A program made the position numbers and the translations under genes. From Klebsormidium nitens (Eukaryota > Plantae > Klebsormidiophyceae): a stretch of DNA of 64,000 bases. Below, in pieces: positions 12,801 to 63,170 of the stretch. The notes under the pieces were generated by a model, which saw only the letters and a list, made by a program, of their open reading frames with translations, was not told where the DNA came from and ran no database searches. The DNA is taken from NCBI GenBank assembly GCA_000708835.1, contig DF237296.1:25778-89777 (forward strand). The letters are read 5' to 3'. The number at the start of each line of letters is the position of its first letter. Within the stretch, counting starts at the first letter, position 1.

Positions 12801-15800
12801 CGTTGGAAGCGATCCACTGAATCGGCAACCGCCTGATCGCATGAATGAGGTCCTTCCCCACCCAAATTTCATCTCGTTTGACGTCACCCCGTTTATTTTT
12901 CCCTGCCTTTGCTATCGTTCAAATGATGATACGACACCCAACCGCTGCAGCCGCCTGATTGACTCAGCGGTGCCCCCAATTGCTTTAGAACTTCTGCTGT
13001 TAGCCCATATCAATGATTGCCGTGATCTTTCCATTTTCTTACAGCCGAACTGGCGACGCGCGATCCGGCTGCCGCTGCAGCCCGCAGAAAGCGCCCCACC
13101 GAATCGGCGATGCCCGGAACCACTTTGGGGCCTATTCCCATTAATGCGTTTTCCGGAGGGGGCGAGCTTTTCGATACACCGGGCATTCACTTGCATCACC
13201 GCCTGGCGTCTCTGCTAACCCCAGAGGAGTTGGTTATGCTCACCCCGAGAAGGCGGTTAAGGCCCGTGGCCCCGACCATTGGTACCGTTGATCAAACAAC
13301 GGCCCAAGGTAAGAAAATGAAGATCTCTTTTTTCGGGTTGATTTTGGGTGCGTTCCTCGCTGCAAATCAAAAAGGCCAATCGATAAATCCGGGCTTAGAT
13401 GGGTACGTAAAGGTGAGAAGGAGTTGGTATGCTATCCCCGAAAAGGGGTTAAGGCGTGGCCTCAGCGGTTGCTACAAATGATTGAACATCGGCCTGAGGT
13501 TAAAAGAAATTGGGGAGTCAGACTTTACGTCCAAGTCGGCGACCATTGGGTCGAATCTCTGTCTTCACGGTCGCCCGACATATTGGCCACAAAATCAAAC
13601 TTGTAACGTCACTGGGACGACTCAGGTCTCTGCCTATATCCAGTGGAAGCTACTTGGCAAGACGACTTTTCGAGAGCTTTGTACTCCTAATTTTCGAATC
13701 TAGAAGCAGCTGGATTTGAAGCCGACAACTGTGCAATGGTGGCTACTAATGTGCGCTGAAAGTTCGTGTCTCAAATTCTGGTTCCCATAACCCTGTCATA
13801 CCCTCTCCGGAATATGGAATCTCTTGCTCTCTTTATCACAGAGAATGGAGCAGCCCCCCACACCGAGATGACTGCCCCCGATTCAGAAAACGGCGCTTCC
13901 GAATCAAACGGTTCTAACCTTACCCCCGGTGACTTTGTGGTCCTTCGACCGCATCCCTCTTGCCCCCCCCAAGCCATCTTCATCGCCCAAGTTTCCGCTT
14001 CGGGGGTGTCGGAAACAGCCGGATCCGAGGGGGGTGGAACGCTTCTCGCCCGCCCCTGGATGCCGAAACCCGTTCGAAGGGGGCCGAAAATGGATCTCTG
14101 GAACGATCCGTGGGGGCGGAAATGGGTGCCGTACGAAGGGGGGATGTTCGAACTGGCGCCCGATGACGTCATCGCCAGCTGGCAGTCACGTGCCAAGGCC
14201 CCAGAGGAGGGCGTCCCGGTCCCCCCGTTGGTGGCGGCGCGCGTGGACGAACTGATCCGGGGGGGTAACTTGCCTGCTCCGGCGTACCCCCCCTGGGTGG
14301 ACGAGAGCGGAGAGATCGTGAGCGCAAAGGAATGGGGGGGTAAAGTGGGTGTTCTTGCAGGGGAGGGGTCCGCAAATATGGGCGATATTGTCCTGTCCAG
14401 GGGGGCAGTTTCGAGTGCGGAGAAGGGGGGATCGTTGCAGTCGGAGGGGATTGAGGGGACGACGTTCTTCTGGGGGGGAGTCGCGCGGGTCGACGTGCTT
14501 CAGGTGATCCTTGCTGCGTTTCCTCCCTTTTCACCGTAAATTGTGTTGCAGATTTTGGCATGCAATTTTTTTCGCAGCTGGTGTCTTATCCGGCTTGCAA
14601 AAACCCGGGCTCAACCGGCGAACGGGATGGCTCGTAACCCGATTTTAAGGTCGCCGGTTTGCCGTGACGTATTTGGGTTTGCAGCAACTCAGAAAGGGCT
14701 CAATTTGTCCACGCTTGTTTTCTGTTTCGTTTTTGAGCCAGCCTTCGCCCTTCTTTTGCCGTATCAGGTGCTGGGTAAGGGCGACCGAGACAGCGGCATT
14801 GCTGCCTTGCAAACGCCGAAAAGGTTGCTCATCGACGCCCTTTTTCAACAGCTCTTTGACCGTTTCTTGTGCAGGCACCGCCCGGCTTGCGCTTGTTCTT
14901 CTACGGCCCCCACACAGTGACGGTGCATGCCGTCGACTCCCAAGAAGCAGATGCGTTTTACGAGGTACGTCAATTCAACCCTTTGGCTCCAGAGATCCAT
15001 TACGTTTTTGCTTTTTAAAAAGTTTTGCCAATCAGACTCTGTCAATCTCAAGAAAGAACCTGGTGTGGCGATTTCAGGTGGAAATTCTGATCCCGATTTT
15101 GACGTTCTCCACACCCGTGACCTTTCCTAAGTGGGAAACGTTAACCACGGTCTTTTCGGTGCGTCCGCATCCGCAACCCACGCTTTTAATCACCACTTAA
15201 CCCCAAACATCCCTGGCCTTGTTTTCCAAGTGTCGGTCCATCGAATTGTCACACTTCATTGTAAACGTGATGGGCTGGTCTTCTGCCAACTTCGTTTTTC
15301 CGGTCTCCTGGAGAAAATCGCTGGTAGCTTCAGTCAACCAACATCCCGAAGTTGCGAAAGCTCGTATGTGCAGAAAGTTATTTGTTTATGGCTCGTATGT
15401 TTCTGTACAGGCAAATCTTTTCGAAAAGTTGACGCCTCCTTACAAGGACCGGGGGGCAAACTGGGACGGGCTCCCCTACAAGAAGGAGTGCAACCTCTAC
15501 TCCGAGGATGACGTCAGGTGAGTGACGTCGGCGAGGAGTCCCGTGACTTCACCACACTGCGCCACTCGGCGGTTGCTGATTTCAGGACTCCTTGAACGGA
15601 CGGGTCGGGGAAGAGGCCGATCCGCCAGATCAGCGCTTGAGCCTTCAACCGTGGCTGAAAACTCCGGCGACCTTTGAGCGGGAGCGCCTGCCAGAGTTTG
15701 TCAGATAGTCGCTCATGAACAAATTTGTAAGCTGGTTGAAGGGTTGAAGTCTAAGTCGGATAGACTGCGAGTAAGCGGTTTCAGTAGCAAACAACTCTTC

Positions 15801-16945
15801 AGGATGCCCTTCAACCCAAGGTTGAAAGTTGTTACAGCGAAAACAATATCTTTGATAAGGGAACTCGACACATCAACCTTGTCGCAGAAGTGAGGTTAGA
15901 TAATTGACGTGGGGAAGTGAGCGGCAAGCAACTGAGGACGAAGAACATTCAGGCTCAGATACAAGAATTCTCTTAGGGGGACTTTCTGAAGCGGCAACAG
16001 AAATGAGAACAAGAGTCTTGCTAAGACGTGCTGGCCTGATTCTCGTCACATGCTGACGGGACCGCTGACGTCACTATGTCCGCATGCTGACGTGTCTCCT
16101 TCTGCAGGCCTGCTGGTGACGTCGTGGTATCGGGTTTGGGTTGGTTCGCGGTTGGGGGGGCGCCGGGCAAGCGGGGCCGCCGGGGGGGTTCGCAATCAAG
16201 CAGCCGGGGCGAGGTACGCATTCTTCGCTTGGTTCTGAGATGCTTTTTTCCGACTTCTGAGCTTTTTGAGTGCAAGCGTTCCATTCGTGCATCTGTCCAG
16301 GTTTAGAAAACGAAGCCATGTGGGCTTTGGTGTCCTAGGTGCTGAATTCCGACCGGAGGTAAAGCAAATTTCATCTCTGCAGGACTTTTCCCGAAGATTC
16401 TGAATTTTCAGCTCGGAACAGGAAGCTCCGCAAGTTCAAGGTGTTGTTGCATCATATCTTCGTGGTTTGATAGCTCCCCTGGTTTGTCCTTGTTCACTTA
16501 GAAGCAGAGTCGGTCAAATGCTTTCTGTGAAGTGCCCCACTGAGCCAAAGCGCCTCAATCTGCAGTTGCCCGTCCGTTCGCAGCGTTGGTTGAGATTCGA
16601 CCAGACCTCTAGCTCATTCCCTGTTTTTCATTTCAGCTTCGTCTTCGATTCGTCTTGGCTCCGTCAAAAACAATCTTACAGATACTCTGGTCCAAGCCAT
16701 CAGCAAAAGCAGAATGGGACTCGACCCTTTCTTGTCTTCTGTTCTGTCAGGTTCGCCTCTTGGTTCATACACCCCGTGGGGTCGAAGTCTACCTAAGGCC
16801 TTCCATGCCGGTCACGGAGACCGGAGCGGAGTGGGCCGATCGGCCGGACCTGGACGTCGAGCTCGAAAGGCCGCCCATTTATTACCCCAGGCACGAACCA
16901 GTATCCAGGACGCAAGGAGTGCCGTCGAGACAAAGTGCTTGGTAA
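6834..16945 (+). CDS. NOA1: NOA1/RIF1 (YqeH-type circularly permuted GTPase, organellar ribosome assembly), 10 exons, ~1350 aa, with a long N-terminal extension and an internal insertion
   Basis: Exons 6834-8951, 9750-9944, 11165-11350, 11957-12086, 13045-13308, 13842-14503, 14875-14964, 15411-15517, 16108-16213 and 16751-16945 are all GT-AG and phase-consistent. Motifs: Zn ribbon CYGCG...CGRC, AVGGNGG, G4 TKVD, G1 GAANVGKS, G2 PGTT, G3 DTPG, then TFFWGG, VSGLGW and VEVYLRP. An upstream acceptor at 6822 implies a 5'UTR intron. The terminal TGGTAAG could alternatively be a splice donor. Confidence 0.93.
9083..13560 (+). repeat. Degenerate tandem copies of NOA1 exon-intron junctions inside introns 1-5
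   Basis: 9083-9126 matches the exon 1 donor at 40/44. 12176-12236 matches the exon 4 donor at 59/61. Further copies lie at ~10128-10200, 10313-10360, 10663-10735, 10832-10905, 10990-11060, 11655-11710, 12328-12378, 12480-12533 and 13410-13460. Confidence 0.9.
9974..10068. repeat. ~47-bp tandem duplication in NOA1 intron 2
   Basis: ttaaactttt-agacaccttc(g/a)cggttgggg-(a/g)ttgcttagttttgaag occurs twice. Confidence 0.85.
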
Positions 16946-18872: not shown

Positions 18873-21800
18873 CTAAACCTTCCCGTTGGCGTTGTTGCCT
18901 CTGGGCAGGAGCGACTCCACCGAGTTCGCATCCGTCCCGTTGCCATACTCCGGGAATTCAAAGTTCGCGGTTTGCCCGGTGAACTCCAGGAACCAGCCCA
19001 AGATCTGCGGCCCGGGGATCTTAATCACCATGTTCTTCCCGTCGTGGAAGCTGTAGGTTGAGTCGGTGGCGGACTTGCTGCTGGAAGACTTGGAATAACT
19101 GAAGCAGAAGCAGCCGCCCCCGGACGTGCTGCTGCTCTCCAGGAAGGAGTGCGCGTCCCCGTACGTCTTTGCGTCCATCTCGATCTTGATCGTCATGTCT
19201 TTGGCGACCACGATCGCGACGGGGTAGGCCGGGAACATGGCTTTCTGAAATGAATTAAGACAAGGAGGAAGTTTTTGAGTAGAGTGAATTAAAAGAAGGT
19301 CCCGAGTTATGTAAACTGCAAGTAAGTCGACTACAAGGTATGAATGGGGATTCAAAGACTGAGTCTCCGTTTCCCGTTTCTAGAACGAGAGGCGGCAATC
19401 ATCTACAAAAAGGGTGACTGAGAATGTTCGTCGTCAGGTGACAACCTGAAAGCTTATGTGCTGCACGGACCTCGTTGCTGTCTGTGCCGCTGATCTTATA
19501 GTCGTCTAAACAAGCGTGACGTCACTTTCACGTTTTAAAAGTTCGCCTTGGTGTCTTGCCAAATGAATGATGCAACGAAGCTGTCCAATCTCGTTGAGAC
19601 GGCGTACATAGCCACTCCAGCAGAGGACGATTCAAATCGACGTTGTCCGAACACTCAATCTGTAACACCGGCTAATTGACCTAGGGCACGAACACACGTA
19701 ACCTGAGCAGACAGCACGACGAATCGATCCTACTCGGTCAAGATATTATACCTGGGCCGCTTCGAGCTGCGTCGTGTACGCCTCTTTATTGGCGTTAAAG
19801 AGGGCAAGTGCGTCGTTGTACTCCTTCTCAGGGAGACTGGCAGAGGGGCGCGTGACGCGGGTCGTGGGACCCGAGGCCGTGACGCGCGTACGGCTGTTGC
19901 GCATACTCCAGACGTCAGCATTCTCCTTGAGCGCCTGCACGGGAAGAAATTAGTCTGCGTTATGATCCGAAAAGACCATAAGTCGCAGCTTCAAGTCCGG
20001 GGGAAGTATCGGTCAGCTTCGGGTAAGGTGGCCTCGCTTGCGGAGCGCGTGAATACAAGTGTCAGGGCTTTTCTTTCTTTTTGCCTGAAAAAGTGATAAT
20101 ACGACTCACGCAGCTTAAAGTACCAATGTACCTACAATCACAGGGTCGGTGAGTTTCCGACAGAAGTTCCTCAATTACAATCAAGCGATATACTTCGTTG
20201 CGACATAGCAGCTGACAGAATCGGACGTTCTTGTTCATGCAGACGTTTTCGGCGGAAGATCGGCGGAAGATGACAGGGTTTGCGATTTTCAGGGCTTAAA
20301 AAGGCCCTCCAAAAGGCTGCAAAGTGTTGGGAAGGTGCTTGAGCGATTCGCGGAGCAGTCATGTCGCTTGCCCTAAGGATCCTACCAGAAATAACAAATG
20401 CATGGAAGGCAGATTACGTCGAGAGTCTTCCCTGTGACGAAACCCCAAGCGAGTTGAACCAGGGAAGGACCACTACTCACGGAGGGGTTGAACCAGCCGC
20501 CCCGGTTGATGGTCACTTTGGTCGCTCGGAACCCGAGGTCGAACTTGGCACGCTCGGCCTTGAAATCCTTGGCAAAGTTGCTGCTGGCGCTGTCAGACGA
20601 GCCTCCCCCGCTGCCGAAGAAGAAGCTCGTGCTCCAGCTCGTGTGCGTTGCAGAGCTCGCTGTGAGAGTGCTGGTACTCTCCCGATCGCTCTGAAAAAAC
20701 ATCTTCACGTCCATGAAGCGGCTGACGGGGCCCTCCGGCTTGGACGGCGTCAGTTCGGCGGCGCTCTCTGGGCGGAGTATCTTGAAGACTGACGTCAGCT
20801 TCTTCGCGGCCTCCGCCTTCTCCGGCTCGGTTTTCAACGCGGTGTAGTCCGGGACATCTTCAGGAGTCAAACTCGGAACTCTATCTTTCATTGCGGGGTC
20901 GGTCTCGAGCGTCTTGTTCCGCTCGTTGTTCAGCGCAGTCTTAGCGGCCTCCAGCTCCGTCGTGGCCGCGGCCTTTGCCGCCTCGCTCGCTTTGGACACC
21001 TTGTCTGCAGCGGCGTCGTACTCTTGATGAGGGGCGCGAAATCCGCTGCGCGGCTGGCGTTGATCTGCGACCTAACGAAGGCAATCTGGCGGCTGTAAAC
21101 AGACAAGACACGTTCAAAATCAGTGTTGCAATCGGTTACATTGACGCGTTCTTGCAATTTGTTCCTTGCGTTCGAGCGGTCATGAAGTAGTATCGCAGTG
21201 CTGCTGACCACGAGCTGAAAGAGCAAATTAGCTAACACTCTTTCATGACGGACGCGTGTCAGACCGGACAAAGTTTTCTTCTTGTTAGAAACTTGGACCT
21301 GGAAATGAAACTGCAGCACTTGGTCTCGTCGAGCTGAACGAACTCATTCAGGACTGTTGTCGTTGACGAGAAGAAACATCACAAGATCATACCGAGGAAA
21401 ATCCTCTCGAGTATGATGAAAACCCGGCACTATAGTGCACGTTCGAAATCAGCAGGTGTGGTTGCTGTTGCTAATCCCTTTCACAAGAGAATAAGGCTGG
21501 ACGCAATCAGAAGCTCTGGAAACCTTTGCCATGCACGATTCTACAGATTCTGTTGCCAAGCTTTTTTGAAGGCAAACAAACAAACCGAAAATAAGCAAAC
21601 ATACCGTAAACTCTGCCTGGGCCTGCAAAAGGATCGCTTCAAGTTCTCTGGAGACGGATCGGAAGTGAATCGATGGAGCGGATATGTTGCTCTAGGGACA
21701 GATAAGCTCTCAGACGAGTCTTCTGAGGACTCAATTCGCTTACTTGAGCTGGCGAATCTTGTTCTGCAGATTGGTCTTAGACGCCTCGACATTCACAACC

Positions 21801-24800: not shown

Positions 24801-26905
24801 TAAAGGAGCAAAGATGAAAACTCTAAAAAGGCTAATTGCAAGCATACCTGTCGTTCAGAAGGACATAAAGTTCCATGCGTGTCAAGGTGAGGGGTTGGGC
24901 CACAACATCTCCCGTCTTTGAATTAATGGTGATAATTTGCGTTGAGACCTTCTCGAGCAGCCAGCTTCGGATAGCCTTCTTGTCCTGCAGCAGGATGGCA
25001 GGGACGAGGAAATTGATGTTGCCATTTGAGAGCAATCCAATATCAGAGGCAATCTCGCAAGTTTCAAGTCCTCACCATGGAAAGAGCATCGAAAGGTCTT
25101 CCGTTATTGAGCAGCCAATTGAAATGCAAAGTGGTGGCCTCCACAGCATCTGCATGAACGCCATTGAACACCACAATTTTGTTACAAGAAAGACCTGCCG
25201 TGACAAGGTGTGACAAGGTGACCTTCTTGATCCACTGTTACCTGCTGAAACCTCGCGTTGTTCTTTCCAAAGGCTGGCATCAGCGTGTTGAGCGCCTGCT
25301 CATAAACTTCGGATACTTTGCTGCCATTTGGGCCACCCACGACCTCAGCGACGTCCAGCATGCCGTCCGACAGGGCGAACTCAGCCTCCAGCACCTGCAG
25401 AAGATTCATAGGTTTCCAGAAGAAGTCAGATTCTTGCCGACTTCACCGTACAATTGGAATCAGGCAGACATGCATTGGGTGAGGTTAGGCCTTGATACGA
25501 AAGTATTGAGTACTCACGTGGTGCTGTGACCTGCTCTGCTGTGTCTTGCACTCCAAAAACCAACAGCAGACTCGAGCAACAACTCCGTGATTTGGCAACC
25601 TTTGCAGCTTAACATTCAGAATGGGCCACCTTTTCCCAACTTTGGATTGCAAAATAGGTGCACTAAGCAGAAGGGGCATCCGTACTGAACTGCTTGTAAG
25701 GAGGAAAGCTCATTTGATTGATTCTCACCGGCTGTGGCTTCTCCATGTCGGCATATGCGTCCTCCACAGCAAACTTGTAGGTCGTTTCATCAAGGATCCT
25801 TCCCGGGAACTCGAGAGCAAAAAGTTGGCTTGAATTTCCACCACCAAAGAGCTCTTGCAGCTTTCCATAAAGCTGATCCACAGCATTTTGCCGTTTTGAA
25901 TCCGCCATGGCTCCTGCAAATGTACCTAGCAGCTCTTGATCTCTACTATGAACAAGAGGGGCTAACTCAGAGTCCGCTGTTGCTGACGTCACCAAGTTGG
26001 AAACCCCAATACCAGGAGGTGCTGGCAATTCGACAGATGGTGAATGTGGCAGCACAAAGAGTGCGGGTTCAATTGGTAAGTCTAAAAGACTAACAGGGTT
26101 TTCGGAATCAGCGGAGCTTGGTACTGGGGGAAGGGGGCCCCTTCTTGACTGAACAGCTGAAGGCTCAAACGTCGTCAGAACCTGCAAATGTAGACACGTG
26201 GCTCTTAGCTTTTGTAACTATGAGGTTCATCATAATTAGTAAGTGTTTCTGAATGCGCAGAGGGCCGCAGATGCTTGCTTGCTGCTGCACATGGTGTCAC
26301 TCTATATCCTGCTCATTGAATAGCCACACTGCATATATGGCCTGCCACATTCAGCAGACTCAAATCCAAGGGGAATCTATGCTCTGCATTTCTGAGCGGG
26401 CCACGTGGCAGAAAGTTCACATGCTTCATTTAGCAGCTCCGCTACAACCTAGTCCCCATCGTACCTCTGGTTCCACTCAACCACACATCTGCCAGAGAGC
26501 CTAGTACCTTACTGAATCGCATGCGAAAAAAGCAGCTGGCCTTAGGGAAGCCACACGTATCTATTTTATGAGTTCTTCCCTTACCACGTCTTCAACAATA
26601 CTTCCGGTGAGCTGGACTCCGTCCACCAAGCTGCTCTTTCCCGCCGGTAGCACGGAGGACCTGGCTCGCAGCTCCCTGTTGCCTGTGATGCTGATGGTGT
26701 GCACTTCACGTCCAAGGGCAGAAGTGATGGCAGGTTCCGTAGCACCCTGTAGACGTTGAAGGCCTTCTGGCAGCTGGTCGTGTAGTAATGTCTCTTCGTC
26801 CACCTGGAGAATCGTGTGCTTTGAAATGTCCAAGTTGGCGGTATCAAGCGGTTGGTCTGCGGGGGTGCGCACGAAACAGGAGAAGCATTTGCTGAGAACG
26901 GGCAT
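18873..26905 (-). CDS. Uncharacterised ~1030-aa protein, 11 exons, with a coiled-coil middle and two Ser/Gly-rich C-terminal segments; two 1-bp frameshifts as assembled (pseudogene or assembly error)
   Basis: Exons 26585-26905, 25729-26181, 25242-25394, 24848-24984, 24066-24258, 23032-23340, 22336-22568, 21744-21862, 20481-21092, 19752-19934 and 18873-19244. All join in phase except exons 7 and 9, each of which is one base short. Intron 7 has a GC donor (CAG|GCAAGC). Conserved-looking blocks: QLFALEFPGRIL, EAEFALSDGMLDVAEVVGGPNG, YPVTFSPVDW, KVTINRGGWFNPS, FPAYPVAIVVAKD and IKIPGPQILGW. The start codon is uncertain. Confidence 0.75.
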
Positions 26906-29628
26906 GGGATTCTGGTTGGGAACCGTGAGTTGAAGTGCTTTGAATACGCAGGAACTTTGACAACTATATATTAGTGGAGCTGGAGGCGTGAAGTAACGAA
27001 CTGGCTTAGCTCCTAGCTGTATTTTGAAATATGCGAAGTCTTTTGAGACGGGAATGGCTCCTTGGGAAACTCCCTTTCCAGCCGTCAAGACTGATCAAGA
27101 CTCAGTGCGTGCTCTCCGTCACAAGATGGTATTCATCATGCATATTAAATGCTTCCGAAAAACAGCGATGACAACATTGCAGTACTAGCAGCGCCTCAAT
27201 ACTGGCACTAGTGCTGCCATATCCTTCCCGGCCGCTCAGTTTCTGGGATCGTTGGTGGCTGCTGGCAGCTGGCTGCTGGACTCCTTAGTATAATCTTGTT
27301 TGTTAACTTGTGACCTTCCTTAGACCTTTCTTAGACCTTTAATGGGCCTTTAATCTTAGACCCTGGCTCGTTCAACGGCAATGGGTCACGTGACACGCCC
27401 ATCATACGTTGGCGCCGGCTATTCTAGCTCTTCTTTCGAAATCGCTGTGCATAATGTCCGTGCCCCGAGTCGCTGCTGGCGGCTGAAGCAGTGCTTATGC
27501 TAAACTGACCCCTTGCCGAGCTTCTTTGTGGAAAACACGTGGAAGCTGCTTTTCAGGCACATCATGCACATTAAATGCTCCGGCTCTCTGAGACAGCAGT
27601 GCACACTGCTTAGTAACAGCGGCAGGACCCGTTTCAGTACGTTCACATACGATATACCAGTACGTTGTACCTACCTATATCAGAACGTTCCACGTGCACA
27701 TTGCCACACAACTAAAAGATGCAAGCGCCAACGACCAAATGGCACATCATGCGAATTGAATGCTCTGGCTCCTCCGAAACAGCCCTGCATAATGCCAAGC
27801 CTATGAGCCTTGCGTGTTGCACTCCAGAGTCCAGACTCCAGAGGCCCGCTTCTCAATCTGCATAATGCACCTGCTGGTGTACCGTAGCATTAAGTGCGTT
27901 TCGTGAGTCAGTGAGTCGTGCTTTTGCATGTTTTGGATTTTGAGCCCTGTGGTCCTGATCCGACGGCGCAAGACACTATTCTATGAGCATCCGACGGTTC
28001 TAAACAATAGACTTGCTATCGATATCCCAACAATCTTGTACCATCGGTGCCTGAATCCTGACTCCTGACAGTGACATACCGGTAGGTACTGCCTGGCTGT
28101 AGGTACTAGGACCTATGGCTGGACTCACGCTCATCATGCACGCCGCACCCTGAGCCACGCTCGGTGAGACCGGGATTCAATGAGTTGGCCCTGCAGCTTT
28201 GCAGCTTGCTATGGCTGCATTGGGCATGTCCAATATCGGATAATTCCTTAGGTCTACGGCATACAGGGCACCCAAACATATTGCTTGAAGGATGAAATTT
28301 ATCGGACTAGCGTGCACTTTGACTGTGGAGACCTAACACGACGGATAGTTGGATCCTGTTTGATGAATGCATGATGGTTATGATACTTGCCACTGGCAGC
28401 CAAGCCATGAAACACATGTGACATGGTGAATCATCATGAATAGTACCACATGTACTTGCGTTGGTGACATCAAATGAACGTACCAATGCTCATCATTGCC
28501 ACACCATACTGACATGATGCATTCGCTTAATGCTACCCAGTTCGCTTTGAATCTGTAGGCCGCGCTTGGAGCTCATGGTATGATCGATCTTTTATAGCTC
28601 GTTCATATGGGCGCCGGCAGCCAACATTAGATTGTGCAATTGTGCATAACGCATACATTCGTTGATGATGCATGATATGCCTGGCAACGTGCCTGTGAGT
28701 CCGGGCGGCCCACTGAGATCCTATCATGGTTGCAAGATACAGAACTTGAAGCGCACAAGTTGGAGGTCTGGACGGTCTTGACCCGATATGCATGTGATTG
28801 ACGGCGGCGGTCATGGTATGCTAGCTAGGCCCATCGAGTCGGACCGCGTCCATCTTCAGCGCTCTAGCGCGCGGCGACCACCGACCCAGCGGCACATACT
28901 GGCGAGCTATATTAGTCAATCTAATGTGCAACGGAGTCCAGAATCCGGTGCGCCAATGCATGAAATATAGCAATTATGATGGGCGCGACGGTAGGCGGCA
29001 AGGTTCCGACGAGCGCGCTCGGTTGAAATGCGCCGATTGGACGGCTAATTTCCTCGATTCACTTCAGGGCTGTCGGCCGGAAGGACTTCGATGACCGACG
29101 CCTCGGAATTGGTCCGACAATCACATGACGTCATATTGATGCAAGTCGTTGTAAGCCCGTCCACAATGGACTCATCATGATCTTGCCTGGGCCAGTGGCT
29201 GGGCCACCGAGCTAGCCTTGCAATGTATCATTCAATATCAAGGAAGTCAGGTCATGTTAACCACTAGCTGTGCGGATTTATATAATGCACAACCTGCACA
29301 TTAGGCCTGGGCCTTTCACTCCCTTGTAATAAGAACGACTGGACAACTGTTTTTCGAACTAAGCTCCAAACGATTGTCGGAAACTCGATGAGGCCACCAC
29401 CTTATTACCCACAACATATTTCAAGTAAGATCGTGAGGATTGGCAGGCTCGCTGGAGGACGACTCGGTTAGCAGTGACACATTTGTCGGTGGAGTTTGCC
29501 CATGACCATTGGTCAGTGGCATGCCCATAATCTACCTTGCTTGGCTGCTGTCATGTAGCTATTGGTGACAGTGTTCCGCACAGCAACGAAAGACCCGAAC
29601 TCCCGGATCGCGTTGCCTCCTTTATCGA

Positions 29629-38847: not shown

Positions 38848-41800
38848 ATGGCTGGCAAGCGCTCGCTTCCGCTTTCTTTAGCGGCTCTCTTTACTCTGAC
38901 CGTAGCTTGGTCAGCATGGAGGGGGTTGACAGACTTAAACAGTCGCCCAGAAGGTTGCACGATGACGTACATGTACCCAAACTACGTCCCGATCAACATG
39001 ACGTCAGGCAACATGCTCGAGCCAGGGGTCGCAAGCAAGGGGAAGTACGGGCTGTTCCTGTATGCGGAGGTAGGCATTCATTTTCTCGGTTTGGTCCCTT
39101 GGAAAACTTCCAGAGTGTGCGACTCAGTTCGGACGTCACGTTTGAGTTGTCCCAACATGAGGGGGTAAGGTGTCAAAAACCAGGCCGTTTGCAGTCAGGT
39201 CTGTTTTAACGAAGAGTTGACTCGTGCAATTGCGTTCATGAGCCCCTGTGTCCGCCGCAAGCAGGACAGAAGCTGTTGCGAAAATAGTCTTTCCACACCA
39301 CAGTTCACCACCTCTACGTGCTTCAAACTTGATTGTCACATTCTTGAGATGATGTGCGGTCTTCATCAACCTTCAAGTGCCGGATGGGAGGCTGGAACAA
39401 AACGAAGGACGAAGATATACACTACCGACGTCCTATCAAGTTTGAATTTTAATGCCGCCCTGCAGGGTTGGAGAAATGTCGATTTTCGGGAAAGTCTCAG
39501 GCGCCTGTCCGGGGTACCTGTTCTGTTTATCCCTGGCAACGCCGGCAGCTACAAACAGGTAACAGCCTTTCTGACGCCTTTTCTGCCCTTCTTCTTGTTC
39601 AACAGTGACGAATTCTGTCTCCTGTCGTAAGTGGAGTCCTTCTTGATCTTTCTGCGCAACTTCGGATTTGGACGATGTTGATCTGATTGTGATTCTTGTC
39701 CTATCTTCCAAAGAAAGGCGATCCCCGCGCTTTGCTTCTGGTCAGTAGCACGCTCTGGCGGCAGATTACGCTCCATGAGGGCCGATTTCGAGTTGTCAAG
39801 TCAGCGCCGTTCGATAGGGTTTGGTTGTCGCAGCTCTCTGTCGAAACCCTTCTGTAAGAGTTGTGAAGCCAGAAACAGAGGGAACGCTGTTGCTGGCGAA
39901 GATTCTCACGACATGATAGGACACGTGGCTAGATTTGGTTTCAGAGTCATTTGATTGCATGGCAACGTGTCGTACTGACGATGAAGGACACGAAGCTTGT
40001 GCGCAGTCGATCGAAATGCTGGAAGCTTCGCCCACGCTTATCTGGAAGATCCCGAGTTGGGATTTAGAAGCAATTGTTGACACAGTTTAGCCACGTGTCG
40101 TATCATGTCAGCAACACCGGTCCCATTGATCCAGGCTTCACAACTCGGACAGAACTCTGTAACAGAGGTTTTTTAACCAAAGTCATGTCAACGGCGCTGA
40201 AAGGCAGTTGAAACCTGTCCTGAAGGACCAGTACCGCAATCTGCATCCGGAACGGGCTACCGACGGGAAGCAAAGCGCGTGAAAAGTAACCGTTATAGAT
40301 ATGCCTGGCTTTGAAACCTGTTCCATCTCGGTTCGGATCATCTGAGACGGGATCTGTCATTCAGGTGTTCCATCGGCGACTATGGAAGCAGAGCCAAGTC
40401 CGTGTAAGACTGTTGGAATTTCGGATGCCGCCCTTATTTGAGCAATTGCAAGCACTTCCAGAACCAGATCCTTGTTGACGTCACTGAGGAAGTGACGCAG
40501 GTCAACTGACTGCTGACGTGTCTCCCGTCTTCCAGGTCCGCTCGATGGCCTCCGAGTCCACCCGCCAGTTCGAGAGCGGCTTCACACCGGCAGCCGCGCC
40601 TGTTCCCACCACTATTCCCCGGGCCATGCTCGAGGGCGCCCACAAGTGCTCGAAGGAAAGGTGTCAATACGCCAGCCGCCTCGACTGGTTCGCGGTGGAC
40701 TTTCTCGAGGAGTATTCCGCTCTCGACAGCCGGATCTTGCAAGACCAGACGGAGTTTGTCGTGAAGGCGATCGAGAAGGTAAGGGGACTAAGTTTGTGGC
40801 ACTCTTTCAAGCAGCGCAGTCCCATCTGCCTTCTAGGCAAAGTCTTGGTCTCGATAGATGCGGGACGAAATTGGGCAAGTGATTTGGATACATATTTTGA
40901 TGTGCCTGGCTGGGAGACGTAGAACAGCGATAGGGGAACAGGAACCAGAGCCAATAGCGGATTTGGACGATTCAGAAGCATGCGCATGCTGTAGATCCTC
41001 ATTGAGTATCCAACTCTTGCCTACGAACTGGATTGTTATGGTGGATAGCTGAGTCAGGAGACAGGATGTCAATCCTGCCGCTCCGTTAAACGGCTCGTTC
41101 TGACAAGCTAGCGGCGCCGTAACGGCGCATAAGTCGAGGGAAACGATGCACCCGCAGACTCTCACAATCGCCAGTTCCTTCAACCACCTATTTTGGACGT
41201 TAAGTCTAGAGAGTATTCTCAGGCCCATAAGCTGGTCTATTGTTCCCGACTTCATAACATTAGACGCTTCGATATTTGGGTTTGTCTTGCAGGGGGACCA
41301 CTTCCGGCGGATCGAGCAAGGGAAAACCGCTTGCAAAACCTTTCCAACGGATTCAACTAAGAAAGAAGAGTTTACAACGTGTTCCAATGGTGCCATTTTT
41401 GACATCTCCATTTGGACAGCGGATCTGCACCAGTTATAAACGCGATGCTGAAATGAGTTACTAAAGCTTCTTGTGAAATTCTAATTGCAGATTCTGGATC
41501 TGTACAAGCAAGCGGCCCGGTTCCGGCGGATCAAACGAGGGCGGAAGCGCACGCGCCAACTTCCTACAAACGTCATCTTGTTTGGGCACTCGATGGGAGG
41601 CGTGGCTGCGAGGGCCGCTCTGTTCCACCCCGCGTTTCGGGAGGGGAGCGTCAAAACCATCGTTACGGTCGCGACGCCGCACAGGTAACGCTTTGCGTTT
41701 TGGCAGAGGCTTTGAACCATGGTTTGTTCTTTCGTCGAACCTTTCCGATCAATATTTTTGTCGAAGACTGATCTACATGATTGTTCTGGCGTGGCCTTGC

Positions 41801-44800
41801 TCTTGAGAGGCGCTCAGCGAAAGAGTCGGTTGTCGGCTTCCGCGCACGGAAGGTCTTGCGTTGACCTTTAGAAGGCTCGTCTGCTGCCCTGAACACACTA
41901 GAATTGCTTCAATTGTTCCGTGGTCTAAAAAGATACTGCTGGTGAGTCGGTAACTTCAGTCATTCCGAGCGGTTGTACACCTGGGCATACTTGATACGCA
42001 AAAATGAAAGGGTTGTGACACGACCCGTCCTTTAAGCCAAGAAAGTTGCACAAGAAAGTTTGCAGCTTTGGTCCGGTCTTTACGTCTCTTTGAGCGCTCA
42101 GTACCACTTTCAACTCGATTTCCGTGACCCTTTCTTGCAGGTCTCCCCCAGTTCCCCTGCAATTGAGCGGCTCCCTTTTCTACTCCAACTTCAACCGTAA
42201 ATGGCGCCAAGGCTTCGCCGATACCGGGCCCCTGCGTGACGTCATCGTCGTTTCCATCAGCGGGGGGTCCCGCGACACCCAGGTCCGGACCCCCCTGATG
42301 CGGCTAGACGGGATCGTACCCCCCCGGAACGGCTTCAGCGTCAGTGCCTCGGCGGTTCCGGACGTGTGGTTGGAGACAGACCACCAGGTCATCGTATGGT
42401 GCAACCAGCTCGTTGTCAAGGTCAGTCAACTTTTACCCTGTTTGTTTCGTGCTGTTCATTTTTGTTCCTCCTGTTGTGGCTGAAGACAAGAGTCCTTCTC
42501 TCTCCGCGATTAATTCTGCTGTTTTGCTTCCCTGTTTTACATGTTCCTGGGTTGACGAGTGCAATGCACAAAGGTGTGTGTAGCAGCGGTTGTTGAGGTA
42601 GAACTTGCTTCAGTTGTTTCGGAAGTTTCACTCTCTCTACAAATTGAAGGCCAGTAACCTGATCAACGAACACACCATGCGGTTCCTTGGACACAACATA
42701 CACTGTCCTCTCTTTCCTGCGTCATTAGTGCCTTACTCAAGCATCTTCTCGGTACCGCTTTCTGTGTCGGCAGACGTTTTTTCTTGGCGACCCTGCGATG
42801 CATCAAATCCTGCTGAAGTCGGTGTTCTTACTCTTGCAGCTGTCCAAGGCTCTGCTCCTTCTATCCGATCCCGCCACCCGCCAACCCCACGACTCCCGAG
42901 TCGTCCGCCGGGAGATCCTGGCCGCTAATCTAAGGAGCGCCCTCCCGGAGGCGCTCGGATGGCTGCCACGTGGCAGCTGGACGGGCGATTTAGACTCGGA
43001 AGATCTGGCGGAAATCCAGTCGCTTCTGCCACCGGGAAAAGGTCTTCAAAAAGCTGGAGAAGGTGTAAATGATGGACAAGGAGACGCGACGACCAAAGAG
43101 GCATCGGACGGTGCAGAAGGGTTCGAACCGGAGCTTGAAAGAGAGGTTACAAGTGAAGAGTCGTCAAAAAGCGGTATTGCTTCGGGGCCGGGGTATCGTT
43201 CGCTTCCAGAAAAGGAGCCGACGTCACAAACGTTGCGGGCTAAAGCCGACGGAAGAGACTCTGAACGAGAAACGAGTCGGGAGGAAACTGTGAGCGCAAA
43301 GAGGGCGGAAAGAGGGCGGAACGACCAGAAAGCAGAAAGAAAACGGACTGACGAGGCGGATAGCGAACGGACACACGCGAAACGGTACGGAAGAGCCTGT
43401 CCCAGCGCGTCAGAGCTCGACGGAACAGCAGAAAGGGAGGTTGTGAGTGGCTCTTTTTTGGCGCTGGAGAACGCGGACGCGAGGCAACGGTGGTTTGACG
43501 TGAGAGCCGGACGACAGGGTTTGACAAAACCTCCGGTTCTGGTGACGTCACGGGGTTTTGTGGTCCTTTTCAATTTGGAACCGTGCACCGAGGTTCGAAT
43601 GTGGATGGTTCGAGGAAGCACGTCAGCGGAGCCAGTTAGCCGCAAGGAGGGAAACAGTTCCGGGCGGACGGAACCGGAACAGCAAGCGGCAGACGCGGAA
43701 CGAGAAGAGGCGAAACAACAAGGGCGGGGCAAGGGATTGGATTCCAAAGGGGCGGGAGTGGAACGGCCGAGTGCTGAATCGGAGCAGCGAGGGGCGGAAC
43801 AACGAGGGGCGGAACCGGAACGGCGAGGGCCGGAAGCAGATCGGCGGAATGCTGCCGAGGGGGTGACGTCCATACCGGGTGCTGCGAAAAGATCGAACGA
43901 GAGTCTGGAGGAAGAGCGGGCCTCTGGCGTGGACGGAACGGAACGGGTGCGGAACGAGGCCTTGGACCGAGCGGAACAGAAGCGGAACGCGGGAAGAGCG
44001 GTCAGCGAGGTGACGCTGCAAGCGGGGCGTCTTCCTGCAGGTGAGCAGACGCTTTCCCGAGGCTTCAATTCCAGTCATAGGCTTCTGCTTTTTCCGCTAT
44101 ACTTTGATTGCAAAAAAGAAAGTCAATCAAAATGGTGAGCAAAGCCTCGGAACTTGCGTTCAATTGCCGGCTTCAAATACGCGCTAAGTACCTTGAAATT
44201 TCAGTAAAAATGATCCACAAAAAAGAAGCAGGACATTCTGTTCCGCTTTGCTGAGAGGGTGTCTCACCCCGGTCTAGACGGTGCAGCGTCAACAAGCTGA
44301 GTCGCTATCCCCTCTATGCACAAAGGCCCCAAAGGAAAACAACGTACTTCGCTCCTCAACTAGAACGGGGCGGAGTTGTGCGTGATCATTTGAAACCGGA
44401 CGGTGCACGTTCCAGAGTACCGTCCAAATCGAACGTCCAAGTTGAACGTCAGAAAATTGACGTCGCCGTCGTTTTAAAGGTGACGCCCTGTAGAGTCCCG
44501 ACGCCCACTTTGAGCTTTCGGCAAATACCCTCTCGCTTTCCGTAGGTACGTACCTCCACTTCCAAGCGAACCGTTTCACCTGTTGTAAGAGTCAGACTGC
44601 CGCGTGAAAGTACTCGACCGAGTTTTGCCGTGTTTCGCAGGTAGCCTTCTGAGCCAATCGGGCAGCGACCGACCCACGTGGATCCTGAGACTGCTCCCCG
44701 AGGAACTTGCTGACGTGGACTGGGTCGTCATCGAAACGTCCCGGGCGGACGAGAGTCCGCCGGCCGCTGAACCCGTTCTGTTTGCCCAATTGATCCAGCC

Positions 44801-47205
44801 AGGGGAGGGGACCTTGCAACTAGGGTGGCGGGACCTGTTGGCGACCTCCATTTTCCCTCGGGTGTGTGGCTTTTCGCAAACCATTCTCTGGAGCGCAAAC
44901 CTATTGTCGGACAATATCGCACCGTGGGGCTCAGTAGAATTTCCGTGTTTGTTGAAGCAGACCTTCCGCGACTTGTGAGCACAGTGGATCAGCATCGCTT
45001 ATGGACGAGGTGTAGCAGACCCGGTCCTCTTATTTTGTGGCCTCTCGGAAAGCCCATAGCTGATGGCAAATCACGTGTTAGCGCGCCTGCTTGATCGCAT
45101 CTTCTCTTCCGCTGCTCAGGTTCTCACGCTCCCGGAGGGGCATAGCTTGTGGACTGAGGTCACGGCCCCGCTGCCCTTATCGCTTCTCCCGATGACGCTT
45201 CGGTTCACTCAGCGCGACTGCCCGGCGGTTCAGAAGGGGGACCCAAAATTGGATACAGGTGAGCTGATAGGGTGGTCACATCTGTTTTCCTTTCAAATCG
45301 GCACACCGGCCCTAAGGGTGCGCACCGACCCTAGAAACTCACTTTGGGCGCACTTCGCATTTGTGAGGTCACCCGGACAGACGGCTTGAACGCTCCGCTT
45401 TTCGCGGCCCAGAGTCTCGCTTGTATACTGCGCGCACCGACCCTAGAGACTTTTTCCGAGGTCCGAGTGCGGTCGCCCCCACCCTAGAAAGGTTGCGACT
45501 TTTAGCTTTGGGGTGGAGATCCCGCCCCGAGGGTTGGATATTCCGGCCTCAAGGGTCGGCGACACCTCAAATGTGACCATCCTATCAGCTGGGGATTCGA
45601 TGTTTGGTCGCAACTTTGCAAATAGGGAAGCGTGCTTCTCGGGTCAAGGGGCCTGCTGGTAACAGATCCGTACAACCCTCGATTGCATCGTTTGCAAGTC
45701 GGTGGCGGAGGGTGAGAAGTAATCTGACGTTCAGGTGAAAATCTCTGGAGCAACCGCGAGAGGAACGATATCGGGGCAAAAGCTGACTGAGAAAGCCGAT
45801 TTTGATCGAAGGTCCGCCTTTCAAACATTGACCGACTCTCCGCTTTTCTGCAGGGACGTGCTCGGCTCCATGCTCGCCGCCTCTAGTTCTCGCCTGGGAC
45901 CCGTCCATCGAACAGGAGCGCATTTGGACGGTCACAAACGCGACTACCCTCCAAACGGACGGCTCGCCCGGGGGGGGCGCGTCTAAAGGGGGAACGAACC
46001 CCCCCTCCGTGATCCTTTCCGATCCACGCTGCGGTTATCGCGTCTCGGTTACGATAGCGCCCCACCTGGCCTGCTTCCGTTTTCTGGCGACAAACGCGCC
46101 CCGGATCGTCAGCTTCGCGGTCGCCCTCGTCCTGTTCATTCTCGCAGTCCAGTCACACCCTCGGAAACCGGGGAAGCAGACACCGAACCCAGTAGCCGCT
46201 CTTTGCCAGCTGTTAACCCTCCAAACCACGCCGTTAACCCTCCGAAGTTTGCTGTTAGGCCTCCAAACCCCCCTCCGAACCCGTCTGCCCGTGTCGCTCG
46301 TAGTCGTAGCATTAGCTGCAGCCCTGATCCCCATCAGCCGCTCCCTAGAAGCTGCCCGGGCAATTCGAGTGACGTCAGCCGACGTCTACCTGCTGACGTC
46401 ATCCGCCTTGGCGATGACTTTTGCTGTCGGGTTAGTAGCGCTCCTCGCGGCAGCGCAGGCGACTTTGCTTCGCTTGGTTTTCTGGAGCTTGCAAAGGTTT
46501 CGTAGCACTCAGAAAACGTCGTGTACCGCGCCCGAGTGGAAACATGATTGGCGCCTGACGGGAACGACGCGCGTCTTCGTGGGCTGCTTTAGCGTCGCCG
46601 CTTGCCTGTTGATCCATCCGGCGATTGCTCTACTGGTAATTTTAGTCGTCCGCACGTTAGACACAGTAACGGAAAGCTGCCGGAGTCGAGATCACGACGA
46701 GCGTAGGACTCTCGTCAAAGAGCCCAGTGCCGACACTAGCACCGACGGTCGAAGCGTTGTAGCTAACGGGGAACAAACAGGAAAGGCGGGCGTGGCTACA
46801 GCAGTGCCACGTGGCAGCACGGGGTACGGACACGTGTCCACAAAGGACCAGTGCGGGGCGGCCTTGCAGCGGCAAAGCGGTTGCCTCCTGCTCGCCTTCC
46901 TGAACTTCGTAGTAACCGCCCCCTCCGGGTTTGCATCGTTGCCGTGCGTTTTACGACGCTGGCGAGCCCCCTCGGCATTAAACTCGTTGCTCGTGATTGC
47001 CCCCATTGTAGAAGCTCTGCTTTCACCACATGATCGCTTGCAAGGTGGACGGAATAGGATCGGCTGCTCAATCAACCAGACTGTCAGGTCGTGTTTGTAC
47101 GTGCTGTTGGGTGCTTATGCGTGCTATGAAGGGTTGGTCGAGAGTCCGCTAGGTGCCGCACCTGTGTTTACGTTTGCGGCACTTGTAGGGCTGTTTTTCT
47201 CCTAG
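38848..47205 (+). CDS. PGAP1: GPI inositol-deacylase (PGAP1/Bst1-like), 9 exons, ~1314 aa
   Basis: Exons 38848-39069, 39466-39558, 40536-40778, 41491-41684, 42141-42420, 42840-44040, 44641-44861, 45120-45258 and 45854-47205 are phase-consistent. Features: N-terminal TM plus CTMTYMYPNY, GVPVLFIPGNAGSYKQVRS, DWFAVDF.EE, catalytic GHSMGG, ATPH, SISGG.RD.QV, DHQVIVWCNQLV and a multi-TM C-terminus. Confidence 0.92.
45268..45584. mobile_element. hAT-type MITE (317 bp) at the start of PGAP1 intron 8
   Basis: TIRs TAGGGTGGTCACATCTG / CAAATGTGACCATCCTA match at 15/17. The 8-bp flanks tgagctga / tcagctgg match at 6/8, consistent with a decayed TSD. Internal subterminal repeats accg(a/g)cccta. An 8-bp TSD is characteristic of hAT elements. 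Confidence 0.65.
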
Positions 47206-51572: not shown

Positions 51573-54500
51573 ATGGAAGGACCAATCAGCGGAATGAGGT
51601 CATCTTGGCCGGCGGGACGGCCACAGGAAGCCCCAGCTACTAGCCGCTCTTTCAAGCTCAGAAAATTGCTGTTGAGATACTACCCCCCTGGAATCATTTT
51701 GGAGTATGAGGATCAAGCGGGAGCAGTTCAGCAAAGCAGCCTGGATCTGCTGAATTTGGATGCAGACACGGATGTCGAGGTAAGGAAACCCTTCTCTAAA
51801 CCCATTTTTGCTTTTGAAATGATTGAAACCTGACATCAGCGGAGAGCAAAGTGGACCTGCTGGACGTAGACACTGATGTGGAAGGTGAGGAAACCGTTTT
51901 CTTAACCAACTTATGATTCGGCAAAGAGTTGATCCTTTTCGCGAGAAAAAATCAACTGCACAGCAGACTAACCTGCTGATCTTGCATATAGACTCGGATG
52001 CTGAGGTGAGGAAACCCTTTCCTTAACAATTGAAGCCTTTAAGTGACTGCTGATCTTGGGGACGAAACTTGGCAGGGAACCTTTCCTCAAAGCTGAAGTT
52101 CACTATAACCTTGACTGGTTACCCTGTGGTTACTCCAATCCAGTACTTCCACAGGATGTGGGCGCCAATAGAGTAAGTGCATGTGAATTTACACTCGGGC
52201 GCGAAATGGCTTTCCATTTCTCCTTTTTAGAGCACCTATATCGGAAGAGCATTTGATCAGCATGCTGCATGCACATGAAACGGTTTGGCAAGACAACTGG
52301 TTGGGTTTCCAAGGAACTTGTGTACCTCTTGGCTATGTTAGGACCCCCCTCATAGCACCTGCTATTCTGCAAAGGCAGAGCTTCAGCTTGTTACCTAGCA
52401 GTCCTTTTGATTGAACGCAGGAGCGCCTGTTCAGCACGGGAAAGTTTGAAAACAACGCTCAAGATTGGCGGGGCATCTGTATCTTAGAACCAAGGCATGC
52501 TGCGGGCAGGCAATGGATGCACCCCCAAACCATCTGAAATTTACGACAGCTGCCATTCTGGACTTTTCAGACCCTTAAACCATCATCTGATCAATTCCTG
52601 AGGCAATGCAGCGTGGAGGGCCTTCTTCCCACTATTGGCATGATAATGTTCCTTTCTGAGAAGATTAGATATCATATCAATCAGCCTGGGTGCTTTTGGC
52701 AGGCGGTGTGCAGCGAGATCATCGCGCAGGAGGGCCTGGTCGGCGAGAGCCGGCGCGGCACGCTGCGCAAGATGGTCGAGAAGCTGCAGAAGAAGATGCG
52801 CACGGACGCAGGGGCGCACCAGGAGTTCCGGACGCACAAGGTCAGCAGAGGCGCAACCGCTGACGTCATCGCCTTCACTTTGTTTTTCTAGCTGCTACTT
52901 CAGGTTATCTTTGGGCTTAGGGTTTGTTTGGACTTTTGCGAGCCCTGACGGGGTCGAGAAGCTGCAGAAAAAGATGCCCGCGGACGCAGAAGCCCACATC
53001 GGACGCACAAGGTCAGCGGATGCGCGGCCACCTGACGTCATCATGTCCACTTTCTTCTTTCCGGGCGGTGCGTGTTGTTTTTAGAACCCGCGTTTCTGTC
53101 AAAACTTTTGAGAACCACAAAGATGGTCCAGAAGCTGCAGAAGAAGGTGTGCAGGGACTGGGGCCGCACCCGGAGTTTGGGACGCACAAGATTTCCTGTG
53201 GGGCCACCGCTGACGTCATCGGTTTCGCTTTGATTTATCAGCTTCTGGATTTTGTTATCTTTGGATTTTCTTCGGGTCGGTCACGAGCCCTGAACACGCT
53301 TGAGAAGCTGCAGAAGAAGATGCGCTCGGACGCAGGGGCGCACCAGGAGTTCCGAACGCATAAGGTCAGCAGATGCGTGCCGCTGACATCATTGCGTTCA
53401 GTCTTTTTGACCAATGTGGTCGAGGGTATCTCGCTGGACTCTGGGGTTCCGGACAGAAATGTCGTGAGCCCTGAAGGTGGTCAATAGGCCGCAGAAGAAA
53501 ATGCGCGCAAGGAGGGTCGGACCGCTGTCAGCAGGAGTAACAACTGCTGACGTCATCGTGTCCTCTTCAACCAATGCGTTTGAGTTCGTTGTTAGACTCT
53601 GGTTCCGTTCAGCACTCTTGGGAGCCCAAATGGTGGTCAAGAAAGTCTTGCAATGTGGATGCTTGCGGCCACAAGGGCGCAAGAGCTGACCAGTATTCAC
53701 AAGTATGACCGGGAAATGAGAAGGATTGAGTCCGTCAAGGCTGACGTCATCATTCATATCCTACCAAGCACCGTCGTGTACTCGGGAGGGTGGTTGAAAG
53801 TATGCAGAAGACGATGCATGCTGTCGTGGGGTGAAGCAGGAACTCCATGGCTCAGGGAGAAGAAGGAGAAAGCTTTTGACAAGCATCACTTCCTCGTCAT
53901 TCTGGATTCTAGGGGTTCCTGGTCTCTATGCATCGGCTTTTCGGCAAGCAGGTTGGGGTTCTCAAGATGCCATGTGAACCCTTCTGGATGTTCTCCAAGC
54001 CCGGGTCTTGGAAGGTCGCATCTAGTGCTTGCAAGATCCCGAGAGAGCGCTTGACGTTTGATCCTTCACTAGACGCTGTCTGTTTCTATACCCACATTCA
54101 GGTTAGCGCCTCCACGATACCCATGAAAAGACTTCTGAAGCTCAGCTTCCTCTTGAAGCTCCTCGAACAATCAGCCTTTCTCTTTAAGGTCCTCAGAATA
54201 GTCAATTAAAAGTCCTCAAGTCAACCTTTTCTTAGATTTACCCTTTCTTGCAGAGGTCTTCAGATTAACCCTTCTCCATGACAGGTGTTGAAAGCCCACA
54301 TGCTGCCGTTAACCAACTGTGCCTTCAATAAGTCGGGGGACCGCTTCATTACTGGCAGCTATGACCGCACCTGCAAGGTAAGGCTTTCTGAATCCGAAGC
54401 ATCCCACTCCTCCACTTTCTGCCTCTGTCTAGTTGCTTCTGCTGGGTCTGCACATGCACCTTTGTCTCCGCTCCGCCGTTTTGCATACCGGGATATTTTT

Positions 54501-62732: not shown

Positions 62733-63170
62733 GACACGTCACAGAGGGCAATCTGCATGCAGGTCTGGAAACTGCTTGTCTGGCAGATTGTGGCGCAAGT
62801 TCTGCGCCATTTTCCAGACACGTGGTCGCCGCCAAGATTGCGTACATCGACACGTATGTGCCAACCTGCTTGCGGAGGTGCATGCAGTAACATGCAGCTG
62901 ACACGAAGCACAAGGTGGGCGAGTAAGAGACTGACAGCTCACTGCGGTGGTTTTCCCAATGTGCTGATTTGGAAGGGGCGACCCTGCAAGACTGGCGGCA
63001 ACCTTCGCTTTCGCAATCTCGTCGGGATTCGGCTGCAACAAGTGGGTCACTTCAGTAGGAGTTCCGAGTCAGGACCGTGACAGTCACGTGAAAGGAGTCA
63101 AGCCTTTCAATAGGTAGGTAGGTACCTACCTAGGACACTTGGATAGATGTTTGTATTCCTGCATGCAGAG
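62733..63170 (-). promoter_or_regulatory. ABRE (ACGTGTC x3) and RY-like (CATGCA x4) cluster upstream of the dehydrin-like gene
   Basis: GACACGT on the + strand at 62733, 62817 and 62849, a CACGTG G-box at ~63085, and CATGCA at ~62756, 62881, 62892 and 63162. All lie 0.2-0.65 kb upstream of the ATG at 62516. Confidence 0.55.

Follow-up and report, generated by a model that had tools for sequence, protein, structure and literature searches.

An iterated palindromic octamer in gene bodies of the alga Klebsormidium nitens, a possible site for a dimeric bZIP-type protein

Introduction

Cyanobacteria carry a highly iterated palindrome, HIP1 (GCGATCGC), which occurs in 15- to 300-fold excess, often more than once per gene, and whose function is unknown (PMC5861425). 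Here we describe an eight-letter palindrome, TGACGTCA, in 64 kilobases (kb) of nuclear DNA from the streptophyte alga Klebsormidium nitens (contig DF237296.1); this whole stretch is referred to below as the window. Both words are palindromic octamers that lie inside and between reading frames and are conserved between genomes above expectation (for HIP1, PMC5861425). An earlier note on this DNA had proposed a eukaryotic HIP1 analogue, and the statistical half of that proposal stands: TGACGTCA shows an excess of at least ~10-fold (10-25-fold across K. nitens and two relatives), is present in coding and non-coding DNA beyond what codon usage explains, and is conserved above control words in a small sample. 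What is unsupported is the heart of the analogy, namely a methyltransferase link. The two words further differ in that HIP1 is bacterial and a different word, whereas TGACGTCA lies in a eukaryotic nuclear genome with introns; in that two DNA methylases recognize HIP1 (PMC13756078), a link that is unsupported for TGACGTCA; in that HIP1 has a periodicity of 10-90 kb, beyond the reach of a 64-kb window; and in that TGACGTCA is a known transcription-factor site, which HIP1 is not.

As the earlier note stated, the word is identical to the consensus dyad of the cAMP response element (CRE) and C-box (PMC10163045). Arabidopsis group D (TGA) bZIP proteins strongly prefer this CRE-like element, which GCN4 also recognizes (PMC10163045), and Klebsormidium has TGA factors (PMC6508501). 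Sites of the CRE/C-box/as-1 type (CREB/ATF, GCN4, plant TGA group D; the wheat histone hexamer ACGTCA) share the identical sequence and the local turnover described below. Classical CRE/C-box sites are few, degenerate and close to promoters, whereas the copies here are perfect, occur about once per 3-4 kb and are mostly exonic, deep in genes.

Three other kinds of system bear comparison. The M26/CRE meiotic recombination hotspots of fission yeast contain ATGACGT, bound by Atf1-Pcr1; the core word is the same, M26 acts in coding DNA through a bZIP dimer and chromatin opening, and five copies here read ATGACGT (14164, 15509, 29126, 33967 and 38999). Hotspot motifs, however, tend toward loss by gene conversion, whereas TGACGTCA has accumulated. 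Codons can double as factor-binding sites, and plants have DNA-level enhancing signals in transcribed regions; these signals are degenerate, and the plant ones are biased to the first kilobase. The likeness lies in a transcribed-region DNA signal that constrains codons and works in exon or intron, the difference in that copies of TGACGTCA span a whole 8-kb gene. Bacterial Chi sites and DNA uptake sequences are sharp 8-12-mers, over-represented in coding DNA, that mark a cell's own DNA for a dedicated machine; they are non-palindromic and orientation-dependent, unlike TGACGTCA, and they work with RecBCD or the competence apparatus, neither of which is known from algae. In the literature we found no paper on TGACGTCA in Klebsormidium and no report of a eukaryotic nuclear genome with a highly iterated palindrome. 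New here are the RNA-verified placement in a gene body, the test of sharpness, the conservation test against control octamers, the turnover from exon to intron and the uneven spread among genes.

Results and Discussion

Excess of the Whole Octamer

The window (51.6% G+C, with spliceosomal GT..AG introns) contains 20 exact copies of TGACGTCA, all at the positions reported in the earlier note, whereas dinucleotide shuffles of the window give 0.70 (maximum 4) and Markov models of orders 1-2 give 1.0-1.2. Orders 3-4 raise the expectation to 2-3; orders above 4 give 8-16, but only because such models are made up of sub-words of TGACGTCA itself. Among the octamers of the window the word ranks first in number and, by a wide margin, in over-representation (P ~1e-25 against order 3); no other NNACGTNN palindrome is present more than 4 times. 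The five copies within 52861-53749 belong to one tandem array, which leaves 16 independent copies (15 single ones plus the array counted once), in agreement with the earlier estimate of ~16. The 15 single copies have flanks that do not resemble each other, and shared descent is seen only within the array at 52.8-53.8 kb; a single repeat family, which the earlier note had named as a possible undoing of its claim, therefore does not account for the excess, and a dispersed repeat or transposon-borne motif was rejected for want of common flanks.

The enriched unit is sharp. Sites with at most one mismatch number 49 against 24.95 expected in the window, and the one-mismatch variants alone show no excess (29 against ~24), so that the "many" variants remarked on earlier are at chance level. 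TGACG half-sites outside full sites are likewise near chance (140 against ~125 in the window), rising ~2-fold only within 60-100 nucleotides (nt) of a full site, and GACGTC outside full sites is at expectation. Since variants, half-sites and GACGTC all lie near expectation, the enriched unit is the whole eight-letter dyad. The commonest near-match, TGACATCA (n=5), is the CpG-transition product of TGACGTCA. The flanks carry no further consensus except that T is avoided at -1 (2 of 32 half-sites, P=0.008), and an extended palindrome was rejected on this ground; one copy, at 14164, is embedded in a perfect 14-nt palindrome, CGATGACGTCATCG (14161-14174). A candidate partner motif, TGTCCAAG, occurs at chance frequency in the window and shows no tie to TGACGTCA.

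Relatives of the window were found by exon-by-exon protein searches and contig look-ups, ~108 kb in total; word-based protein searches returned one or two relatives per exon and a profile-free search three. They fall into a close and a distant relative, which are called so below.

Close relative: Logan assembly SRR23617307 (loci L007, L004 and L008), 31.3 kb, identity at 4-fold sites ~0.73, 8 copies against 0.5-0.9 expected.
Distant relative: JGI metagenome 3300060284, 76.7 kb (L003, L005 and L006 reassembled into one contig, together with L002 and L009), identity at 4-fold sites ~0.43, 10 copies (9 independent) against 1.0-1.5 expected.

L007 is syntenic with 29.3-44.0 kb of the window. Because TGACGTCA is the single most over-represented octamer in both relatives, the excess is old and not peculiar to this window, a comparison that the earlier note had called for and that turns out in its favor.

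Placement in Exons, Introns and Gene Bodies

We assigned each copy to a class using a codon-usage map trained on verified exons together with splice-site context; gene models outside 40.4-46.4 kb are predictions, and the RNA contigs that verify this interval do not show transcript starts, ends or levels. The single copies are as follows.

12879-12886: probably intronic, in a predicted plus-strand gene at ~11.2-17.1 kb, between blocks conserved in L008; coding score negative; without L008 counterpart.
14164-14171, plus strand: exonic (P-D-D-V-I), in the palindrome CGATGACGTCATCG; close relative TGACGGCA, distant relative TGACGTTA.
15509-15516, plus strand: exonic, at an exon end (GAT GAC GTC AG, then GTGAGT); kept in L009; L008 has TGACGTTA.
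16066-16073, plus strand: intronic, 37 nt before a predicted 3' splice site, in a TGACG cluster (16040-16125); copy and cluster kept in L008.
19517-19524: probably intronic, between two coding segments of a predicted minus-strand gene.
20790-20797, minus strand: exonic (K-L-T-S-V), coding score 53.
25984-25991: class ambiguous.
29126-29133: non-coding, of ambiguous class, adjoining a minus-strand gene at 29.3-34.2 kb; region not alignable with the end of L007.
33967-33974, minus strand: exonic in a minus-strand gene; kept in the close relative (L007 position 13725), block 92% identical.
38999-39006, plus strand: exonic (I-N-M-T-S-G), early coding exon of the PGAP1-like gene; kept in L007; distant relative INLTAAS.
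40476-40483, plus strand: intronic (RNA contigs), 57 nt before the exon start at 40533; not kept in the close relative.
42237-42244, plus strand: exonic (L-R-D-V-I), in the PGAP1 lipase domain; distant relative TGACGTCG or TGACGTTG.
43543-43550, plus strand: exonic (L-V-T-S-R), in a 1.2-kb exon, within a conserved 13-nt island; 8% of block octamers conserved.
46370-46377, plus strand: exonic (R-V-T-S-A); close relative TGGCGCCA (V-A-P), two amino acids different.
46394-46401, plus strand: exonic (L-L-T-S-S); kept in the close relative.

Nine of the 15 single copies are thus exonic, four intronic (40476 verified; 12879, 16066 and 19517 predicted) and two ambiguous (25984 and 29126). This is a preference for exons (P=0.002-0.04 for coding fractions of 22-35%), and non-exonic DNA is also enriched, ~8-fold (6 single copies against 0.7-0.85 expected, P ~1e-4). 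The copies are unevenly spread, at ~1 per 3-4 kb, and 29.6 kb of the window is copy-free (P=6e-4 against an even spread); the copy-free DNA includes a 1.75-kb ARM-repeat open reading frame (ORF), a 725-codon ORF, WD40 exons and a dehydrin gene.

The firmest placement comes from a gene that is PGAP1-like by Pfam. Four RNA-like runs, which belong to four studies, have contigs that cover 40420-46419 and show one plus-strand transcript with six GT..AG introns.

38845-47202, plus strand: PGAP1-like gene, six copies of TGACGTCA, five exonic and one intronic.
40533-40776, 41489-41681, 42138-42418, 42838-44036, 44637-44860, 45119-45255 and 45851 onward, plus strand: its exons according to the RNA contigs.

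Two parts of this model are predictions, namely the exon listed first and the end of the final one. The exons were searched singly; two metagenome scans for PGAP1 relatives gave no match. The copies at 42237, 43543, 46370 and 46394 are exonic and lie ~1-3.6 kb along the RNA contig, and the copy at 38999, in an upstream coding exon (YMYPNYVPINMTSGNMLEPG), was assigned to the gene by homology. The five exonic copies thus extend across 8 kb, mostly far from the gene start, and a start-site or promoter element was therefore rejected. The claim that exonic copies fall in different frames holds, as both x-D-V-x and [L/M/V]-T-S occur; the "five genes" of the earlier note reduce to about four, since 38999, 42237, 43543, 46370 and 46394 all belong to the PGAP1-like gene. 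A CTGAC 27-57 nt before the acceptor is overlapped by some of the intronic copies; a branch-point role was rejected, as the six verified introns follow no such rule and exonic copies dominate.

Effect on Codon Choice

Protein sequence and codon usage do not explain the exonic copies. The 9.8 kb of coding DNA that is RNA-verified or high-scoring contains 6 copies, whereas 1000 synonymous-codon shuffles give 0.24 on average and at most 3, so the codon-aware null that the earlier note had named as decisive against its claim fails to predict the count. The suspected bias of synonymous sites is seen directly: 6 of 21 Thr-Ser pairs are spelled ACG TCA, while TCA makes up 9% of Ser codons, and 4 of these 6 are preceded by TG. 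TGACGTCA overrides synonymous codon choice, and at 46370 an amino-acid difference goes along with it. The iteration of the word is real and goes beyond chance, codon usage or a single repeat family.

Conservation and Turnover

At ten copies compared with the close relative, six are kept (exonic 33967, 38999, 42237, 43543 and 46394, and intronic 16066) and four are not (14164, 15509 and intronic 40476, along with 46370, where V-A-P stands for V-T-S). Control octamers of the same aligned blocks are identical in 8-58% of cases, from which 2.7 conserved sites are expected (Poisson-binomial P=0.023, n=10). At 43543 the island TGGTGACGTCACG is kept amid diverged sequence, and the intronic copy at 16066 lies among four TGACG words whose 80-nt cluster is conserved and recalls as-1-type TGA-factor sites, which fits selection.

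The site at 15509 shows how copies may turn over. It is kept in the distant relative, so the site is old; in the close relative a synonymous C-to-T change has removed it. There, 35 nt downstream of the lost copy and in the intron, a perfect copy has newly arisen where K. nitens reads TGACTTCA (15544). Such loss with nearby gain is the pattern expected of a binding site under stabilizing selection. That the site shifted from exon to intron speaks against a role in the protein or mature mRNA and for one in DNA or pre-mRNA.

Local duplications were also observed at the related loci. At L008 5750-5830 an intron end and exon start are duplicated (GCTGACGT..TGCAG at the intron end, GCCTGCGGGTGACGTCGTGGTGTCC at the exon start) just upstream of a conserved copy. 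At L009 11600-11980 there is a ~180-nt duplication with TGACGTCA in each unit (11656 and 11835), and two further copies lie within 350 nt upstream of it (11306 and 11423).

Candidate Readers and Alternatives

Palindromes are 1 in 256 octamers, and a palindrome selected in duplex DNA whatever its frame, strand or position in exon or intron would therefore point to a two-fold symmetric dimer as its reader. We favor, with a probability of roughly 0.4, the reading that selection acts on TGACGTCA as a site in double-stranded DNA for a dimeric protein of bZIP type that works in gene bodies. In the mechanism we propose, a two-fold symmetric dimer of the bZIP kind, with TGA (group D) or CREB/ATF-class proteins as candidates, would bind sites scattered through the bodies of many, not all, genes, with exons preferred. 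Each occupied intragenic site would give a small benefit, for example by keeping gene bodies open or by boosting or insulating transcription, and weak selection in a large microbial population could uphold it.

Several points weigh against this assignment. bZIP elements are typically located at promoters, and 9 of the 15 single copies here lie in coding exons; transcription-factor sites are usually degenerate, and near-matches and half-sites here are at chance; a density of ~1 per 3-4 kb together with exon preference is unusual for regulator sites. The conservation test comprises 10 sites and one close relative. In addition, methylation of the central CG blocks CREB-type binding. The bodies of active K. 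nitens genes carry CG methylation (PMC5890265; the published MethylC-seq data set is GSE104474), and the sites would therefore have to escape methylation or the reader to tolerate methyl-CG.

A more far-reaching possibility, which we consider doubtful, is that TGACGTCA is a genome-wide gene-body mark through which a dedicated dimeric reader, possibly methylation-sensitive, labels or organizes a class of the alga's genes. This would entail tens of thousands of intragenic, mostly exonic sites at which selection bends codon and even amino-acid choice. If true, such a mark would give the nucleus its own equivalent of HIP1, Chi or uptake sequences, a kind of system not described before. If TGACGTCA is read by a protein in gene bodies, the alga carries a second, DNA-level message in its coding sequence, one dense enough, if this is true, to influence the codons and amino acids used by a large share of genes; it would offer a tractable eukaryotic model for the 30-year-old puzzle of highly iterated palindromes such as HIP1, and would show a possible early streptophyte role of bZIP/TGA proteins before their land-plant roles in defense and development. 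Gene design, codon optimization and motif-based promoter analysis in Klebsormidium should take the word into account.

Among the alternatives to a dimeric bZIP-type reader, a link to CG methylation survives best, though we regard it as unlikely: TGACGTCA would be a preferred target, seed or boundary of gene-body methylation or demethylation, or the site of a reader that requires methyl-CG. The word has a central CG, its copies are biased to gene bodies and exons, their spread among genes is uneven (29.6 kb copy-free, P=6e-4), and HIP1 offers a precedent in its recognition by two DNA methylases (PMC13756078, PMC4390886). On the other side, eukaryotic DNA methyltransferases are not known for octamer specificity, and the observed/expected CpG ratio, with exon pieces pooled for base counts, is ~1.0 in TGACGTCA-rich genes and 0.7-0.8 in the ARM and dehydrin genes, which have no copy; if the TGACGTCA-rich genes were heavily methylated in the germline, the reverse would be expected. 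A methylation-decay signature was rejected, as those genes show no CpG depletion. The methylation link partly overlaps the bZIP reading, since a reader of this kind could itself be a bZIP protein.

Less probable still is a neutral mutational or repair bias, comparable to bacterial very-short-patch repair, that keeps creating TGACGTCA without function. Such a process, long discussed for HIP1 (PMC5861425), would bend codon choice equally and fits the enrichment of non-exonic DNA (6 single copies against ~0.7-0.85). The repair-driven sink suggested by the earlier note is nevertheless a poor fit: density is highest in exons (9 of 15 single copies), where constraint is strongest, sites are kept above control octamers, one-mismatch neighbors are not depleted (29 against ~24, with the CpG-decay product TGACATCA the commonest at n=5), and 29.6 kb is copy-free, which a genome-wide bias would not spare.

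An RNA-level signal (an exonic splicing enhancer, another mRNA element or a self-complementary 8-mer for transcript pairing) is, in our estimate, quite improbable. Exon preference would suit it, as would the several intronic copies that overlap the branch-point-like CTGAC 27-57 nt before a 3' splice site; a protein-RNA site, however, does not need a perfect palindrome, one site moved from exon to intron between species, and an Rfam search of the window gives no RNA family. That the excess is an artefact, whether of chance, base composition, codon usage or a single repeat or transposon family, has next to no probability: 5 of the 20 copies do share descent in one tandem array, but the 15 single copies stand in unrelated surroundings, the nulls for composition, Markov order and codon usage all fail, and TGACGTCA is the top octamer in the relatives too.

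The Tandem Array and Other Features

The clustered copies lie in an array upstream of a WD40 gene.

52771-53826, plus strand: six-unit tandem array, units of ~175 nt, with copies at 52861, 53033, 53211, 53548 and 53742.

In the remaining unit, at 53384, the copy has decayed to TGACATCA. Each unit comprises an exon-like piece (ending ...HK) followed by a 51-nt mini-intron-like segment, GTCAGC...gcTGACGTCAtc...TTTTTCTAG, and the array may be an exon-duplication array. Mean column identity in the six-unit alignment is 53%, and the sole invariant run is CTGAC[G/A]TCAT, in keeping with selection on the word. The downstream neighbor is a WD40 gene; the label DAW1 that the earlier note gave the array is unconfirmed. 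An exact look-up of the 584-amino-acid ARM ORF, which belongs to the copy-free DNA, returned no record.

In the syntenic DNA of the close relative, a gene for a 569-amino-acid HEAT-repeat protein (L007 6100-10919) separates the PGAP1 gene from the neighbor upstream of it and contains one TGACGTCA; K. nitens has only ~2 kb at this place (36771-38807), a presence/absence difference. The distant-relative contig carries an RVT_1 reverse-transcriptase ORF (L006 17863-19632), and the telomere-like word AACCCTAA is over-represented in the pooled distant-relative loci (12 against 1.8 expected).

A second ACGT-core word, ACGTGTC, which is the core of the abscisic acid-responsive (ABRE)/G-box-like element, occurs 22 times in the window against 5.8 expected, and CACGTGTC 12 times against 1.7, two of these being GACACGTGTC palindromes. 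Examples lie at 46829-46838, 57955-58455 and 62733-62855, with several clustered at 57.9-58.5 kb between the WD40 and dehydrin genes. The same 14-nt string, GCTGACGTGTCTCC, which combines a branch-point-like CTGAC with ACGTGTC, ends two unrelated introns (16088-16102 and 40514-40528), 15-20 nt before the acceptor. At 30852-31268, in or beside a minus-strand gene, tandem repeats of 102-116 nt are the source of the frequent word AATCTGCA, and this repeat region (window 30758-31174) aligns to the close relative at 72-84% identity.

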